From Selaginella moellendorffii (lineage: Eukaryota > Plantae > Lycopodiophyta): a stretch of DNA of 64,000 nt. Positions 19,924 through 36,000 of the stretch are shown here, piece after piece. The DNA lies in contig NW_003314267.1 in NCBI RefSeq assembly GCF_000143415.4, forward strand, positions 2,645,839 through 2,709,838. Direction: 5' to 3'. Under the pieces are notes generated by a model. It saw only the letters and a list, made by a program, of their open reading frames with translations, was not told where the DNA came from and did no database searches. A program made the position numbers and the translations under genes. Each line of letters begins with the position of its first letter. Position 1 is the first letter of the stretch.

Positions 19924-19996
19924 GGTTTAGCGCCAAGGCATATACCCCGATTTAAAACTGACTAAGGCTTACCAGATCCTAGGGTTTTGAGTGGGG

Positions 19997-20638
19997 ATGG
20001 GCTACTCGACGCAGCCATGGCGCAGCAGCAAGATAGGGCTGCTGGAATTCGTGGACGTCTCAGGCAGGATGATGGAGAATTTTCTTCTTCCAGGGGATGA
20101 GAGCCAGAGTGACAGGGAGTACCTGGAGATCAATCTTGCCCACGCGGGTTTGGGCGGGCGGCAGGCGGCCGAGGCGCGGCAGCTGCTCGACGCGGTGGAT
20201 TTTGCCAGGAGATGGAGCATCGAAATGGGCGATCTGGTGGAGATCCAGCGCCGCGTGGTGGGGAGATCAAGCGAGGGATTGCCATGGCTTGTGAGTTGGC
20301 TTGTGAGGTGGGCTTTCCCAGATTTTAGGAGCAACGAGGCCCGTGACGAGCTGCGCGACGCAATCCTTCCCAAGCTCAACGCGCGCCTTGCCCAGTCGCA
20401 AGACCCTCTCGAGCGAGTCAAGGCGGCGGCATGGTTTTCTAAGTGCTTGACGAGCCTGCGGCCCTTTGTCGATGGAAACGCTCGCGTTGGCGAGGTGGTA
20501 GTGTCGATCATCCTCAAGGATTGGGCTCCTTTTCCTCTCAGGATACACGATCGTGGATGGCTGCGCGAGCAATCAATTCCAAGGGATGGTATTGGAGAAG
20601 AGGAGCTTGCAGCCTTGATCCTCCAGCGGGCCGCATAA
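19997..20638 (+). CDS. Fic/DOC-domain protein with degenerate active site (pseudo-Fic), intronless, ~213 aa
   Basis: KAAAWFSKCLTSLRPFVDGNARVGEVVVSIIL matches the Fic helix-loop-helix (HPFxDGNGRxxR) with H->R, G->A and R->E; shares PFP and LAAL motifs with the 31706 Fic. Confidence 0.75.
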   Translation: MGYSTQPWRSSKIGLLEFVDVSGRMMENFLLPGDESQSDREYLEINLAHAGLGGRQAAEARQLLDAVDFARRWSIEMGDLVEIQRRVVGRSSEGLPWLVSWLVRWAFPDFRSNEARDELRDAILPKLNARLAQSQDPLERVKAAAWFSKCLTSLRPFVDGNARVGEVVVSIILKDWAPFPLRIHDRGWLREQSIPRDGIGEEELAALILQRAA

Positions 20639-29449: not shown

Positions 29450-29522
29450 GGGTGTTCTTGGCGCCCAAATTCAAAATATCTTCGTTTGGAGGATATTCGC
29501 TAGGGTTTATGACGAGGGCGGT

Positions 29523-31638
29523 ATGCTCCTCGCGAATCCACTGCCTTGTTTCAAGGCTTTGGAGCTTCAGCACAGATTTTCTCCGAGAATTCGAGCGCTG
29601 CGCTCCCGGTGGCGCGGCGCCAGAGCATGCTCATCGTCGGCGCCATTCGAGACTAGTAAGTGGAATTTGGTTGTGAGTTTTGTGGTTTTCTTCTGCTGCT
29701 ACAAGTCGGGCCAGCAGCAGGAGCAGCCTTGGAAGAGAATTCGTGGTGAGAACTTGATATTCTTCTCAGGTTTAGCTGCGAGCTAGATTTTTATGGCGTG
29801 ATTTTTGGAATTTCTCGCTAGATGAGCAAGAAGAATTTGATGCTGGTTTTATCCATAATTTTTCCGGGCTTGTATCTAAAGGGACTGAGAAGCTCCCACA
29901 TTTGAGGAACCGGGTGGAGCGTATGATGCAGGCTATCCAGCTGAGGAAAGCAATAAACTACAACATCCCCGCTTCAAAGGTCTGATTTCTTTCCTTGTTT
30001 TCTCTACAGTCTCATAGAATTCTTCTGTTTGCAGATCTTGGAAGCTCTCACCGCTGCTAATTGTCACGAGCCATACTGCTACGAGCGCATAGAACTTCTC
30101 GGCGATGCGTATCTCAAGTGGGCCGTGAGCACCAGACTCTATCTAAAGTTCTCAGATTTTCCGGAAGGAGAGCTCACGATCACGCGTGGAAAGATCATCT
30201 CAAACTCGGCGCTTCACTACCTTGCCTTGGAGAAAGGACTTGAGACTTACGTGAGGATAAATCCTTTCGTGCCTGGAAGAGAGCCCACGGATCTCCAAGA
30301 GCTCTCAAGTAAAGTCCTGGCAAACGTGGTGGAAGCACTGATCGGAGCTTACTACGTCCACCATGGCGACAAAGGTGCTCGGCACGTAGTGGAGTGGCTT
30401 GGTATCGAGACAGGCTTTAGCGATGCCGAGCTCCAGATCGCCAGGGCTGGAAGTGTTGTTTCTCCAGAGGTTCTCAATTCGATCGACTTTGAGGGGCTGG
30501 AAAACACACTCGGGTATAGTTTTAGATCGAGAAATCTGCTCGCTCAGGCTCTCACGCACTCTTCTTCTCGGCAAGCTTCCATGGTTCCTATTTACGAGCG
30601 TCTCGAGTTTATAGGTGATGCTGTGCTGGACCATCTCTTGACAAGGCACATATACTTCTCCTACAAGGACTTACATCCCGGGCGCTTGACAGACTTGCGC
30701 TGTGCAGCTCTTAACAGCGAGAGTTTTGCTCGAGCAATGGTCAAGCACAAGCTCCATGCTCATATCTTGCACGAATCGAATGACTTCCACTCTCAAGTAA
30801 GTTGTTGATCTCTTTTCTTTAGTTTTGTTTGGACGAGTAGTTTCCTTTGCAGCGCAGATAAAAACTTATGCGAAACATGCGCTTAATATGGAAGAGAATG
30901 CCATCTATTCGTATGGTTTTGGAGCTGTCAAGGCACCGAAGGTGTTAGGAGATGTTTTCCAATCACTCGTTGGGGCAGTCTACATTGACAGTGGCTTAAA
31001 CTTGGATCAAGTCTGGAAGGTCTGTTGTTTTTCTTTTTTCCTTTCTTTCTCTTAAACATGAAATCGCAGGTTTTTGAGCCATTGCTACAGCCGCTGGTGA
31101 CACCAGAAGCAGTTCCAATCCATCCAGTCCGCGAGCTCTACGAGCTCTGTGACAAGCACTTGAAAAAACTGGAATGGGATTACTCCTTGTCCGGGGATCT
31201 GTTCCTAGCCAGGGCTCTCGTCGGAAACAAAGTTCTCGGCCGTGGTACAAACGTCCAAAAAAAGATGGCGAAGAAGCTGGCGGCCATCAATGCAATAGCG
31301 AAGCTCGACAAAAGCGCGTCCCCTCTAACACCGTCTCAAGAAGAAAAAGCGAGTGGAGAATTCTCAAGACAGGCGCTACATGAGCTGTGCTCTCAGAGAG
31401 GTTGGCCATGTCCAGACTACAAGTAAGTTTCTAGTTTTCTCCATCTTTTTATCGATCTTCGTTTTGCAGCACACACAGTGAAACCGGGCCGGCCCACGCA
31501 AAGATGTTTACATGCACAGCATCGGTTCGTATCGAGCAAGGAGAGAAACAAGAATGCATCGGTCAGCCAAGGCCTACGATCAACAAGGCCAAAGACTCGG
31601 CAGCAAGGGTGCTTATGGAAACTTTGCAAAAAAGTTAA
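29523..31638 (+). CDS. Truncated DCL1-derived RNase III protein: connector helix, RNase IIIa, RNase IIIb and two dsRBDs; no helicase, DUF283 or PAZ
   Basis: LPHLRNRVERMMQAIQLR..IPASK/ILEALTAANCHEPYCYERIELLGDAYLKWAVS, YERLEFIGDAVLDHL, PGRLTDLRCAA, PIHPVRELYELC, FSRQALHELCSQRGWP, GPAHAKMF..ECIGQP..KAKDSAA all follow plant DCL1; exon 1 is inferred. Confidence 0.88.
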
Positions 31639-31705
31639 GTCTTTTCGTTCTTTGTAGAGCTTTGATCATTTCAACGAAAGTTAAAAATTTCATGTTTTTA
31701 CAAGG

Positions 31706-32797
31706 CTAGAAGGTGGCAAAACTTTGAGAGCCAAGAGCATCGAAAAATCTCTTCCATCCAACGTAGACTCCCTCGATAACCAGCGCAGCTAGATCCGCTG
31801 GAGGATAAATCCTGGCATTGGCAACATTTTCCTCCGCCACTACAATCCGAGAGGCACCAGCGCCATCGCTGCGAACCATCTCAAACTTTTGCTCCTCCTG
31901 AGCTCTCGCGAAACATTCATAGTAGTCCCTCTTGTCCACGAAAGGAGGTTCATCCGCATTGCCATCGCTTCTCTCCACGAGGAGAACATTGGGAAACGGC
32001 ATCACGCTGCGAAGGAGTGCTGCTAGAACGATCCTCCCAACCCGGCCATTCCCGTCCAGGAAAGGATGGACGTTCTCAAACTCGAAGAAGACCCTGGCAC
32101 CAAACTTGAGGATCGCCTCCAAGCTCTCGGCCGAGAACTCCGCCTCGTCGATGGCGATGAGCTCCTTGAGTTCTTCGTTGGAGCTCGCCACCAGCTCTTC
32201 CAGCGCTGCTTCCACTCGCGTCGGCCACAAAAAGACGTGAATTCCACCCGCTAGCGTCCTGGTAAACACCACTTCGTGCATCTCTCGCCTCAAGTGTGCT
32301 GCAAACTCGGGCTTTGTGCTCGCCATGAGCTCCTGGTGAGCTTCCAAGATCTTTGGAACACTGAGGAGCTCGACCACTGTGCCATTCTCTTGGTGATCCG
32401 GAAAGAAAATCCTCAAGGCTCGGTCGAGGCAGCGCACGGCTTCCAGCCTCCTATCGGATTGAATCACATCTCCCAGCTCAAGAGCTTTGCCCCGAAGAAT
32501 GGCTTCCCTCGTCTCCTCAAAGGTGTCAAATCCCTCTCCCTCGATCTTGTTTACCTGGAAGAGGTACTGCGACAGAGCCTCGGGGCCATAGCTCTCTCTC
32601 GCCCACCGCTTGTGCTCCTCCGGGAGCTGCCTGTATCGATCTCGGAATTCGTGGATCCTAGAGACGAGCTCGCTAGTGCTCACTGCGTCGCTGGATCGCC
32701 AGAATGGATTCGCCGAGACCTCGTAGTCCGCCTTTCCCGACGCCCGTGCGTCTACTGCGATCACAAGAGCGATCGCGAGGATGAATCGAAGGAGCAT
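31706..32797 (-). CDS. Fic-domain (AMPylase-type) protein with N-terminal signal peptide, intronless, 363 aa
   Basis: Canonical HPFLDGNGRVGR motif; VNKIEG resembles the (S/T)xxxE(G/N) inhibitory helix; hydrophobic N-terminus MLLRFILAIALVIAVDARA. Confidence 0.9.
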   Translation of the reverse strand: MLLRFILAIALVIAVDARASGKADYEVSANPFWRSSDAVSTSELVSRIHEFRDRYRQLPEEHKRWARESYGPEALSQYLFQVNKIEGEGFDTFEETREAILRGKALELGDVIQSDRRLEAVRCLDRALRIFFPDHQENGTVVELLSVPKILEAHQELMASTKPEFAAHLRREMHEVVFTRTLAGGIHVFLWPTRVEAALEELVASSNEELKELIAIDEAEFSAESLEAILKFGARVFFEFENVHPFLDGNGRVGRIVLAALLRSVMPFPNVLLVERSDGNADEPPFVDKRDYYECFARAQEEQKFEMVRSDGAGASRIVVAEENVANARIYPPADLAALVIEGVYVGWKRFFDALGSQSFATF

Positions 32798-33074
32798 CGC
32801 TCAACCCTATTCTCTCGCTGACAAACCCTAATACAAACTTTTTATATTCCCTAGTTTAAATAGGATAATATATATTTAGGGGCTCGCCATTCTTCCATAA
32901 GCCCTAAAACCAGAGCGCCAAATTCAAATTTAAACGTGGAGGGACCATCTTACAAGTTCTTTCTTTTTTTTTTTTTTGGCCTTTCTCTTTGGGGAGAACG
33001 AATGTACACAAACTTGGTCCCTTTCCTCACTAGAGCAGATAAACTAAGCCTTGGAAAATTAGTCATCCGCTCTC

Positions 33075-36000
33075 TCAACTCTCACTCTTTCTTCCTTCCA
33101 ATTTATGCTCGTCTTGATCATGATCTTGGTGTTGATGATTTTGCTGCTGTTGATCGCTTTCCTGCTGCTGCGGTTGCACTGCAGCTTGTTCCTGTTGCCG
33201 CTTCATCACCCCTTTCTCGAGCACATCCACGGGAACGTAAGCGAATCCTTTCGGCAAAAGCCTGTTGTGCATCGAGGCCTCAGTGGGGGTCATTATCTTC
33301 TCTCGACCCAAAGGCTCCGAGTGCTGCACAAACAAGGTGACAATCAGTCACGAACCACAAAAGAGGAAAAGACAGAGACGCTACCCGGTTGAATCTTCTG
33401 AGCTTCTTTTGATCCCGGATTCCGGTGTTTGCGTCTGCTTTCGTCGTCGACCATGTCAACTCTTTGGTGTTGTTATTTCTTCCGGCCGGCCAGATAGGTT
33501 CCGTCAGCCTCGACTCGGCAGTCCAAGGCACGTCCAAAAGGCTATCGCTGTACAGTGGCCCGTTTCCTTCACCTGGTTTTTGATGATTCACAGCTTGATC
33601 CACCGAGTGTCCTCCCACGACAGCTACAAGCTGATTAATGTACAAATCTTTAATACAATGTGTCAGCTCCCGCTGGAAAGAACACAACGAGGCTTAGAAT
33701 GCATCAAAAGAAACAACCGCGGAAGTGGTCTACCTTGATCCGCTCTCTCTTGCAGATGCGCTCGCAAATAAGCCGAACCCGCTCAAACTCAACCTATGAA
33801 ACACCTTCAGCAAAAGGGAGAGAAGAACAGGAGAAGCTTTTATACCCGAATCTGCCGCAGTGCATTTATCTCGTCCGGAGAACCATACTGCTTCAGCTCC
33901 GCCTGAGAGACGAAATCAGCTGACTGAACAGAGTTTTGACCAATTAGTGCGCGTGAAATATGTTTGAAAAAGGTGGACTAAGCAAACCTTTGCTCTCTGT
34001 TGAGGACTGTGACGCTCACAAAATGCTCGGTAATGAGCTCTGCCATTGATATTTCTCGCGCTGATATAAAGCCCAGAGTCTCGTGCACACATAGGATGGA
34101 AAGCACCGGAGCAGTGACCGAAGTTGCACTGGTAGTAAAAAAACATAAAGGTCCGTAACGATATTCGAGTTAAAAAGACTCCAAACCTTGATACATGCTC
34201 CTTGTTGTTGCTGGCAGATGGTGCACGTTAAGTTAAGCCGCTCACTCGGGACGGCCTCCTGAAAAACATTCTGCTTTAGATCCCTCTAAAGCTGGAAAGT
34301 GCAGATTAAACTCACCAGTCCTCCAATTGGACACGATTGCTCTCGTCCGAAAGTTGTCTTCGGCACCCACTGAAAGAAACACAATTACAGCGATGCTCGG
34401 AAGACGAAAGTTGAGACATTACCAGAGCGCAAAAAACATGCACCCAACGTCCATCCGATGATTTCTTGAATGCACCATACGCAATAGGACATAGAGCGCA
34501 TTGAACACCCGGTGCTATCCGATCGCCATCTTCCATTAGCTTCACTGGCTGGTACTGGAGCTCGGTACAAGGCTGACAATACCAAGGAGCTGTAGGGAAA
34601 GGGTGAATACCATAGCAATCTTGATGGACTGCAACCTGCACACACACCATAGTTGCCACATATGTTTGCAGAGAAAAACAAAAAGAGAAAACGCTTACGT
34701 TGCACCGGTGGCAGTGGACGATCCTATTCAGCCGTAGAGATTCGTTGCTACTGCACACGTCGCACGCGTACTGGTCTTCATGCCTGTAGAAAGCGGGTTG
34801 CACTCTAAAGGACGACGAAACGTTGAGCCTCGGTGGTTTCGGTACAGGCGGCTTGAACGGACGCACATAGGGAGAATGCGGGTTGCCATGGTTGAGCTTA
34901 TACTCTGCCGTCGCGTCTTGAGTAGGATAGTACGGGTCATCGTGCGTCGCGAGATCCCGTTTCACATATCCTGTCCTCGGCGATGCAGCAGCAGCAGCAG
35001 TAGCAGCAGCCAATACGGCCTGAGCTTCTCTATCTTTTTTCTCTTTCCTGCCTTGTTTTCGAGCTTCCTTGACATCAGCTAGAAACTGACTGACAAAAAG
35101 CAGATCTTGCAGTTGTTTTCTCGCAGCTTGCCGCTCCTTGGATAGCTGGCACAGTATTCTAGAAATCAATCGCTCTGTAAAAAAACAAGAGAAAGAAGCG
35201 TTGAGAAAGTTTCAGCTTATGGTCAATGTGACATACCTGACATGACACGATTTGATTGTGCTCGATCGATCAGCTGGTTTTGCAGAAGGAATATTTCTGC
35301 TTCCACCTCGTCCTGTGGACACCAATCCAGTACACCGAGATGCTTGGCTTTACGCAACTGCTGCCACTGCTCATCCAGACTATTTCTGTCCGAGGTACTG
35401 CACTCAAGTTCCTCCTGACCAGAAAATGAGCAGTCTAGTGTCTGGGAATTTGATAAGTTCGGTTCCATGTGTAACAGCCTTTTCATGACCCCAGGAATTA
35501 CGTACAATTGCTGATCCGTTCCCCCAGCGCTGGAGAAGCAACAATATCAGTATAAATTACTATACAGAAGCTCCAAACACTCACTCGATTGAGTCTTCAT
35601 GATCTTGCGGACTAGAAGCTTCCAACCCAGGGCTATCACTGTCAAAAATCCCATTTGACATCTCATTGTCAAAGAGCCGACTCTGGTTTTGCATAACTGT
35701 CATCATTGGCTTTTGGATCTCCTCTCCTTGCAAACTTTCAGCCACAGATGGTCTGTCGTCCTGCATTGACGTATAGAAAGATCATTCATCAAATTCAAAT
35801 GGAACTAAACGATCTTACCGCTTCGTCGCCGAACGAACCAAAGTCTTCCTCAACTTGAAGTAGCTGGCAGTTTATTTTCACAGGACCAGTTGAAAACGTT
35901 GCTGTATTTTCAGGGGAGTTGCCGTGACTCGGACTTAATTCATCGCTGTAGCCATTTTTCTTCAGTTTGGAAACAGATTGTCCGCTGTCACTCCCACTTA

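Follow-up and report, generated by a model that had tools for sequence, protein, structure and literature searches.

An intact, transcribed Fic-domain gene concealed by its public gene model in the lycophyte Selaginella moellendorffii

The locus and its public gene model

The stretch of DNA analysed here, hereafter the window, is 64,000 nucleotides (nt) long and comes from Selaginella moellendorffii, a lycophyte; window numbering is used throughout. On its minus strand, at 31706–32797, lies the complete coding sequence of a Fic-domain protein, intronless and made up of 363 codons plus a stop, as supported by the open reading frame (ORF) listing, by Pfam, by RNA contigs and by a second haplotype. 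The original prediction, made from the sequence alone, had described an intronless ORF of 363 amino acids (aa) at this place, and both the ORF listing, where a single uninterrupted frame runs from an ATG, and the RNA contigs agree with it. An in-frame TGA is found 6 nt (two codons) upstream of the ATG and the second in-frame methionine is residue 158, so that M1 is the sole usable start and the leader is part of any full-length product. The features named in that prediction are all present, namely a hydrophobic N-terminus, the motifs VNKIEG and GGIHVF..P, the catalytic motif HPFLDGNGRVGR, an NGT sequon, and a C-terminus devoid of KDEL or HDEL. Its point of reference, the flowering plants, does not hold, S. 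moellendorffii being a lycophyte. Chance does not account for the ORF, given a Pfam E-value of 1.1e-12, homologues down to an E-value of 1e-203, and a fold Z-score of about 25.

The top database matches are two hypothetical proteins of S. moellendorffii, SELMODRAFT_407185 (330 aa) and 447619, the latter from the second haplotype, and the intact 363-aa protein was not found in a collection of 15 billion proteins. In SELMODRAFT_407185, a 99-nt segment (32007–32105, minus strand) is called an intron. This segment is in frame, is bounded by GT at 32105 and AG at 32007–32008, and is coding, as it holds the whole catalytic loop. On alignment, the public protein lacks residues 231–263 and reads LEAIL-N-VMPF across the removed stretch. 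Because the catalytic loop is cut out, the Pfam Fic match is lost (the model has zero), and the protein carries no Fic annotation.

Transcription of the gene was assessed on assembled RNA contigs over window positions 29500–34500, from four runs (X1, X5, X6 and X11) of four studies; such contigs drop rare isoforms, and give neither the strand nor the true transcript ends. The ORF is covered in all four studies, in answer to the expression check that had been proposed for it. A single unbroken contig spans it in X1 (31470–32808), in X5 (31610–32806, a stand-alone contig of 1197 nt) and in X6 (31470–32819), and no splice joint was found within the ORF, positions 32007–32105 included, in any of the four runs. 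Introns of the adjacent genes are removed in the same material, four in the plus-strand neighbour (GT..AG ends, five joints with one alternative acceptor) and seven in the minus-strand neighbour (CT..AC ends). Since the contigs are unbroken through the ORF while the introns of the neighbours are removed, the gene is transcribed and the catalytic loop is retained.

Could the public model nevertheless be right, with a 99-nt exitron removed and a catalytically dead, Fic-like scaffold as the main product? The GT..AG ends and a length that is a multiple of three would suit this explanation, as would the fact that several paralog models also drop the motif region. In X11, furthermore, two contigs end within the alleged intron, at 32026 and 32072. 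These ends do not coincide with the proposed junctions, as the contigs enter the segment from either side, by 19 and 35 nt, and the break is explained by an allelic difference at 32024, which adjoins it. Three runs with single contigs through the segment, and the lack of any joint, stand against removal; in addition, the segment holds the most conserved residues of the family, with conservation at the protein level in ferns and animals. I consider the exitron very unlikely. The public model of the gene is wrong, in that it splices out the catalytic loop.

The same region is missing from the GenBank models of two paralogs, SELMODRAFT_414686 and 444864, and from that of the allele, 447619. At the loci of the two paralogs, uninterrupted ORFs with HPFRDGNGRIGR and HPFKDGNGRIGR are present (L001 3878–4882 and L002 4001–5071), and the ORF of the allele is likewise intact despite its model (L090 3001–4092). 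This looks like a systematic annotation artefact, one that hides the Fic family from domain surveys. As such surveys miss loop-deleted models, counts of plant Fic genes are underestimates.

Spliced plant genes flank the Fic gene on either side within 170–200 nt, and the neighbours are the same in both haplotypes, namely a PHD-finger gene, an RNase III/dsRBD gene and a malectin-like receptor kinase. The second haplotype has the same 363-codon ORF with 7 nt differences, corresponding to four synonymous and two non-synonymous codon changes, and variants of both haplotypes are present in the RNA contigs. A setting between normal plant genes had been claimed from the sequence, and it is borne out by the splicing of both neighbours in the same contigs and by its recurrence in both haplotypes. 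The lack of introns, a composition somewhat above the window mean (GC content 55.7%, and 64.8% at third codon positions, against 49.2%) and the mainly bacterial distribution of Fic proteins might have suggested contamination by bacterial DNA, or a very recent acquisition of the gene from bacteria. Contamination is excluded by the shared neighbours and by the presence of both haplotypes among the RNA contigs, some of which extend into a neighbour. The nearest relatives, described below, are Selaginella and fern genes, followed by animal ones, and the family motifs occur in no prokaryotic genome searched. The chance that either form of this explanation is correct is negligible.

From the RNA contigs, the minimum transcript extent is 31610–32819 (minus strand), with a 5′ untranslated region (UTR) of at least 9–22 nt and a 3′ UTR of at least 96 nt. 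A candidate TATA-like element, TAAATATATATTA, can be read at 32866–32878 on the same strand, 69–81 nt upstream of the ATG. In X1, the depth is zero over 32840–33006; this and the position of the element fit a short 5′ UTR.

The Fic gene converges with a plus-strand gene for a truncated, Dicer-like RNase III/dsRBD protein at window positions 31470–31710. The contigs of X1 and X6 join the two genes, which indicates that their 3′ ends overlap; such overlapping ends, beside a Dicer-like gene, could yield double-stranded RNA. One intron of the plus-strand neighbour (window 30796–30858) has two acceptors, 30853 in X5 and 30858 in X1 and X11, and X6 keeps this intron with a 12-nt deletion at 30820.

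Fic domain and predicted structure

In a Pfam scan, residues 145–262 match the Fic domain (PF02661) over positions 2–93 of the 93-position profile, with 49 bits against a gathering cut-off of 24 (E-value 1.1e-12 as above). Nothing else was above cut-off: the scan returned no tetratricopeptide repeat (TPR), no Fic_N (PF13784) and no C-terminal winged-helix domain. A match to RPAP1_N, at 16.6 bits and below cut-off, was discarded as chance. With NCBIfam, matches were sub-threshold only, to SoFic, AnkX and NmFic.

The catalytic motif HPFLDGNGRVGR is encoded at 32033–32068 (minus strand) and spans H244–R255 according to the codon table. The Fic motif has been defined as HPFx[D/E]GN[G/K]R (PMC2686095), and the motif found here has this form; residues H244, P245, G249, N250 and R252 are invariant in 71 family members. 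Upstream in the protein, the motif VNKIEG (V82–G87; 32537–32554, minus strand) stands at the end of a helix of residues 60–85, with a predicted local distance difference test score (pLDDT) above 90. A phmmer alignment covers residues 43–273 and Caenorhabditis elegans FIC-1, and pairs E86 with the glutamate of TVAIEG, which is the residue mutated in the hyperactive entry 5jj7 (E274G). E86 is invariant in the plant family. A flap β-hairpin (32228–32269, minus strand; residues about 177–190, with strands 178–180 and 186–188 at pLDDT 85–92) includes GGIHVF, and the longer pattern GGIHVF..P corresponds to residues 184–192; within it the family shows no variation at H187, F189, W191 and P192. A further motif, PxWR (P31–R34; 32696–32707, minus strand), is family-specific, with P31 and W33 invariant in the plant alignment. 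The sequence PFWRSSDAVSTSELV, residues 31–45, shows the N-terminal pattern of PxW[RKQ] followed by TS..ML.

An initial structure prediction, from 5 plant sequences, reached a pLDDT of 65.8 and was superseded by an AlphaFold model built from 71 family members, with a pLDDT of 84.6 and a predicted template modelling score of 0.86. The model possesses a lone N-terminal helix (residues 2–18), followed by helices 41–56 and 60–85 and by the two strands of the flap. The motif then adopts a helix-loop-helix arrangement (helix 223–243, loop 244–249, helix 250–264), and two C-terminal helices follow (289–300 and 334–356). The top Foldseek matches to this model are human FICD and C. elegans FIC-1, with E-values of about 1e-8 and a probability of 1.00. 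In a VIA-align superposition with residues 186–441 of FICD, the Z-score is 24–25, with a root-mean-square deviation of 2.7–3.5 Å over 237–252 residues. The conserved C-terminal part is therefore a portion of the FICD-like Fic domain and not a new domain. A structure search in the ESM Atlas returned generic bacterial Fic clusters. The Pfam score, the Z-score and the FIC-1 alignment together show that this is a genuine Fic fold with an intact motif and a glutamate of the inhibitory type, as the original prediction had proposed.

N-terminal leader

Signal peptides consist of n-, h- and c-regions, with small residues at positions −3 and −1 of the cleavage site. The first 19 residues of the protein (32741–32797, minus strand) resemble this pattern, with a basic n-region, MLLR, a hydrophobic core, and ARA before S20. 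The 11-residue Kyte-Doolittle mean peaks at 3.4 over residues 5–15 and is below zero by residues 14–24; the core is about 11–12 residues long, and is part of the region modelled as a helix (2–18) at low pLDDT. An N-terminal extension of 22–25 residues is found only in the window paralog, where it is identical in both haplotypes. In the paralogs, the fern members and the inspected animal relatives, the protein opens with the PxWR region and carries no hydrophobic leader; secretion is thus no trait of the whole family, whose ancestral state was probably cytosolic.

The N-terminus fits a cleavable signal peptide, and I lean towards secretory targeting. An alternative is that it serves as an uncleaved anchor, giving an FICD-like type II topology, or that it has no targeting role, the enzyme being cytosolic like its paralogs. 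The use of an N-terminal anchor by FICD (PMC2686095) and the leaderless start of the relatives are in line with this. For spanning a membrane, however, a core of 11–12 residues is short; a polar stretch with small residues at −3 and −1 comes next, a typical sign of cleavage, and the two haplotypes have kept the extension unchanged. On these grounds an uncleaved or non-targeting N-terminus seems unlikely, and a cleavable signal peptide is preferred.

The NGT sequon (N137–T139; 32381–32389, minus strand) is located in a variable surface loop, residues 132–146, which is modelled with lower confidence, and it is not conserved in the paralogs; it gains meaning only on entry of the protein into the endoplasmic reticulum (ER). 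The C-terminus reads ...SFATF.

Family, relatives and origin

When 1.84 billion representative proteins were searched exhaustively with a profile, the gene proved to belong to a family. Selaginella has about ten Fic loci or more, tandem copies among them, and two proteins of the fern Adiantum nelumboides are among the relatives, so the gene is not an isolated oddity. Three transcriptome proteins, P0004, P0012 and P0025, also belong to the plant family, and the two that were placed in a tree group with the fern. In the paralogs and the fern sequence, HPFxDGNGRxGR is kept in uninterrupted ORFs. Some members have received automatic names, “Fido domain-containing protein” for UniProt entries D8SRP9, D8SRP7 and D8SF41, and “adenosine monophosphate-protein transferase fic-1” for RefSeq XP_024542721. 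Among paralogs the ratio of non-synonymous to synonymous substitution rates (dN/dS) is 0.12–0.26, with dS near saturation, and the gene is under purifying selection.

Beyond plants, about 100 proteins were found at E-values of 1e-31 to 1e-11, with an N-terminal PxWR and mostly HPFxDGNGRxCR. The labelled eukaryote-type members come from Asterias rubens, A. amurensis, Mercenaria mercenaria and Sinanodonta woodiana, all chromosome-scale animal assemblies, and one further labelled member of this tier is from EukProt. The motif PxW[RKQ] occurs in 64 of the 122 plant and eukaryote-type rows, and in none of the 30 prokaryote-type rows. A feature search in the ESM Atlas recovered eukaryotic Fido clusters, with Mollusca and Ascomycota as the commonest phyla. 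A homologue search with the 71-sequence profile was dominated by bacterial Fic proteins that share HPFxDGNGR words, and it named Asterias proteins.

Phylogenetic trees were computed with FastTree (152 rows) and with IQ-TREE under LG+C20 (54 rows); both are unrooted, and cover the plant, eukaryote-type and prokaryote-type rows without FICD, fungal or Dictyostelium proteins. In the IQ-TREE analysis, the plant Fic sequences form one clade, with support of 94 in the Shimodaira-Hasegawa-like approximate likelihood-ratio test (SH-aLRT). One of its subgroups unites the window gene, 414686 and 444864 with their sister group, Adiantum 068990 and two fern-like transcripts (supports of 99 and 100); a second contains both a Selaginella and an Adiantum member. 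The split between the prokaryote-type rows and the plant and eukaryote-type rows is supported at 94 by IQ-TREE and weakly, at 52, by FastTree.

Both plant subgroups hold lycophyte and fern members, and on my reading of these sequences the family would predate the lycophyte/fern divergence. The Selaginella genes would belong to a patchy, mostly intronless eukaryotic lineage, distinct from that of FICD. In the data searched, seed-plant members of the family appear to be missing. The two plant-specific family motifs, one N-terminal and one C-terminal, occur in none of the genomes of 185,579 bacterial and archaeal species, and a scan of prokaryotic genomes with the plant profile gave 213 pattern matches and no relative, which rules out close prokaryotic kin only. 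In viral contigs, only generic Fic cores were found, at 32% identity or less over at least 100 residues, and at higher values on short motif stretches; a viral donor finds no support in this. The original prediction had proposed that the system was horizontally acquired or anciently retained. The tree pattern fits presence before the lycophyte/fern split, and a recent bacterial transfer is not upheld; ultimately the family may stem from an old bacterial transfer, or may have been spread by mobile elements.

Several observations were made around these relatives. A degenerate Fic-like ORF of 215 aa lies in the window itself, on the plus strand at 19991–20638, 11 kb from the Fic gene. It shows 30% identity to residues 206–269 of the Fic protein, and reaches 22.2 bits with Pfam Fic, under the cut-off of 24; in its motif, LRPFVDGNARVGE, the histidine is replaced by arginine, a glycine by alanine and the last arginine by glutamate. 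The ORF could represent a pseudoenzyme, or else a copy in decay. Elsewhere in Selaginella, XP_024542721 and SELMODRAFT_421387 are tandem Fic genes (L091 3001–3966 and 4702–5835), and the allelic scaffold of this pair carries 425001, 424999, LOC9639754 and LOC9639673, a local amplification of a second Fic subfamily. In Adiantum, the 5′ part of a Fic gene is locally repeated (L003 5281–6885), with three overlapping or adjacent ORFs that contain ARYEQLH, two of them with FLFQVNKIEKGGFDTYA; as a result of this repeat, the annotated fern protein starts downstream of the PxWR region.

Among the eukaryote-type relatives, three single-ORF Fic genes stand in tandem on an animal-like metagenome contig of 620 kb (L004 2138–8927), adjoining a carboxypeptidase M14 gene and SH2 fragments. 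Another, P0032, is found on a 3.1-Mb contig between Bro-N/KilA-N genes and many short ORFs that lack Pfam matches (L005 and L006, 3754–11305). This gene content hints that the P0032 island is virus-derived or mobile, and that mobile elements may spread the Fic lineage among eukaryotes. A protein from the giant-virus bin GVMAG-M-3300021444-4 (L031 3001–3315) shows 25% identity to residues 222–363, a match that takes in the C-terminal helices as well as the catalytic loop.

Proposed mechanism and function

The explanation I favour is that of a functional, transcribed, single-exon nuclear gene for a stand-alone, self-inhibited, class II-like Fic protein, with this paralog alone directed to the secretory pathway. 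As a whole, this statement is likely to be correct, and its parts carry different weight. That the gene is real and expressed, and encodes a Fic fold with an intact motif, is virtually certain. For its chemistry, analogy with known Fic enzymes makes the transfer of adenosine monophosphate (AMP) to a protein, or AMPylation, the somewhat better supported choice.

By this analogy, His244 would activate a Ser, Thr or Tyr hydroxyl of the target for attack on the α-phosphate of ATP, with the target held by the flap hairpin. Asp248 and Asn250 would hold magnesium and phosphates, and Arg252 and Arg255 the β- and γ-phosphates. Glu86, on the preceding helix, is expected to compete with the γ-phosphate at Arg255; through this competition the resting enzyme would transfer AMP poorly, and may instead strip AMP from its targets in the manner of FICD. 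This paralog alone would have gained a cleavable signal peptide, such that its product enters the ER and, having no retention signal, may proceed to the apoplast or the vacuole.

A number of points weigh against this explanation. Whether the chemistry is the transfer of AMP, of uridine monophosphate (UMP) or of phosphocholine, or is limited to removal, is unreadable from the residues. The class II inhibitory motif, reportedly defined by Engel and co-workers in 2012, is [S/T]xxxE[G/N], and the motif found here starts with Val where this consensus has Ser or Thr, while the paralogs have Gln or Lys after the glutamate. The 11-residue hydrophobic core could also serve as an uncleaved anchor. A minor spliced form from which the catalytic loop is absent could escape the contigs, in which the strand is not given. 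In the trees, which are unrooted, most eukaryote-type rows are unlabelled metagenome or transcriptome proteins, and the deep branches carry SH-aLRT support alone, from a quick search.

A wider scenario can be drawn, in which a eukaryotic Fic family was retained in the early vascular plants, lycophytes and ferns, and disappeared from seed plants, and one Selaginella copy was independently redirected to the secretory pathway. There it would form an ER or apoplast switch between AMPylation and de-AMPylation, convergent with FICD, acting on BiP-type chaperones or as an exported defence enzyme. I regard this scenario as rather doubtful, and a chaperone-modifying or defence-toxin role, both suggested in the original prediction, is speculation.

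The same fold and active site might instead serve in conflict or defence, and not in housekeeping regulation, either as a secreted, toxin-like Fic protein against microbes or herbivores, or as part of a rapidly expanding self/non-self system; the reaction catalysed could be AMPylation, another such as UMPylation or phosphocholination, or de-AMPylation alone. The ten or so or more loci of one genome, some in tandem and all intronless within an intron-rich genome, are what one might see in such a system, as are the patchy distribution in eukaryotes, the invertebrate relatives in tandem triplets or beside Bro-N/KilA-N genes, and the degenerate ORF 11 kb away. It is also the window copy alone that has a secretion-type N-terminus, and it has no ER retention signal. 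Yet the inhibitory glutamate is kept, where many secreted bacterial Fic toxins have no self-inhibition, and the dN/dS values give no sign of an arms race at the level of the whole gene. Extracellular ATP, moreover, is scarce, and there is no known target. A role in conflict or defence is less probable than the explanation preferred here.

What the gene offers is an intact, expressed Fic enzyme gene in a land plant, although this enzyme class is usually held to be absent from plants, and a family common to a lycophyte and a fern, of which one member probably enters the secretory pathway. A single intronless gene that can be cloned opens the question of AMPylation in plants outside SelO-type enzymes. 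Further questions are whether regulation of the ER-type Fic kind has arisen more than once, and why seed plants appear to be without the family. The practical lesson concerns annotation, as false introns lie over the catalytic loop in this gene, in its allele and in at least two paralogs.

Comparison with known Fic systems

According to a 2025 review, plants and fungi lack the eukaryotic FIC protein (PMC12409994), and the 2009 paper on the Fido fold lists metazoa and a few fungi (PMC2686095). In the supplement to Khater and Mohanty (2015), Fic proteins of Dictyostelium, plants and fungi are mentioned together as clade “E2”, with no species named in the text consulted (PMC4454073). In the literature searched, no paper combining Selaginella with “Fic domain” was found and, judged by title and abstract, none of the five papers using the phrase “Fido domain-containing protein” concerns a plant’s own Fic protein. 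Databases and one survey thus already include plant Fic genes, which are uncharacterised. They have not gone wholly unnoticed, given the automatic UniProt and RefSeq names and the 2015 survey. A Fic fold and transcription were both found, and well-described orthologs throughout land plants were not.

FICD/HYPE of humans and FIC-1 of C. elegans, the metazoan ER enzymes that AMPylate and de-AMPylate BiP, are the best structural matches, and in them, as in the model, the inhibitory helix is followed by the flap hairpin, the catalytic loop and the C-terminal helices. They share with the Selaginella protein a complete catalytic motif, a regulatory glutamate aligned with E86, and a hydrophobic N-terminus, which in the Selaginella protein would lead into the secretory pathway. 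However, the Selaginella protein has no TPR, and its structural match begins at FICD residue 186 or later, past the TPR region. Sequence similarity to FICD is weak (E-value 0.007), and no better than to bacterial Fic proteins (1e-5). The N-terminus resembles a cleavable signal, whereas FICD carries an N-terminal anchor (PMC2686095), and the gene is multi-copy, in a clade of its own with the PxWR motif, whereas FICD is single-copy. Orthology to FICD was rejected because of the missing TPR, the weak kinship, and nearest non-plant relatives that are TPR-less invertebrate proteins. In mechanism the protein would resemble FICD and class II Fic enzymes, with the stand-alone invertebrate proteins as its nearer kin.

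These invertebrate proteins (Asterias rubens LOC117301629, Mercenaria mercenaria LOC128554084 and LOC123529401, and a Sinanodonta woodiana Fido protein) are uncharacterised, and are the closest non-plant relatives in the profile search, with E-values of 1e-31 to 1e-15. They share the PxWR...TS..ML pattern and a single domain, are encoded by single ORFs that are often in tandem, and are placed with the plant clade in the tree. They differ in that their identity to the window protein is 20–27%, that they mostly have HPFxDGNGRxCR where plants have GR at the end of the motif, and that those inspected have no signal-peptide-like start.

Bacterial class II Fic proteins, such as SoFic of Shewanella, CdFic of Clostridioides difficile and BT_2513, also have the inhibitory glutamate N-terminal to the core. 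CdFic is the best sequence match in the Protein Data Bank (E-value 1.2e-5), with SNKIEG opposite the VNKIEG of the window protein, and the structural matches of this group to the model have Z-scores of 17–24. In contrast to them, the window gene is eukaryotic and nuclear, and lacks both Fic_N (PF13784) and the C-terminal winged-helix domain.

The named Selaginella Fic loci (XP_024542721, D8SRP9, D8SRP7 and D8SF41) come from the same genome and belong to the same plant clade; their catalytic motif is intact, and they match Pfam Fic. They form a distant subfamily, with about 31% identity in the case of XP_024542721, and lack the signal-peptide-like leader. New here, relative to these loci and to the systems above, are a gene hidden by a wrong model, and the secretory-type leader of this paralog, which had been undescribed.

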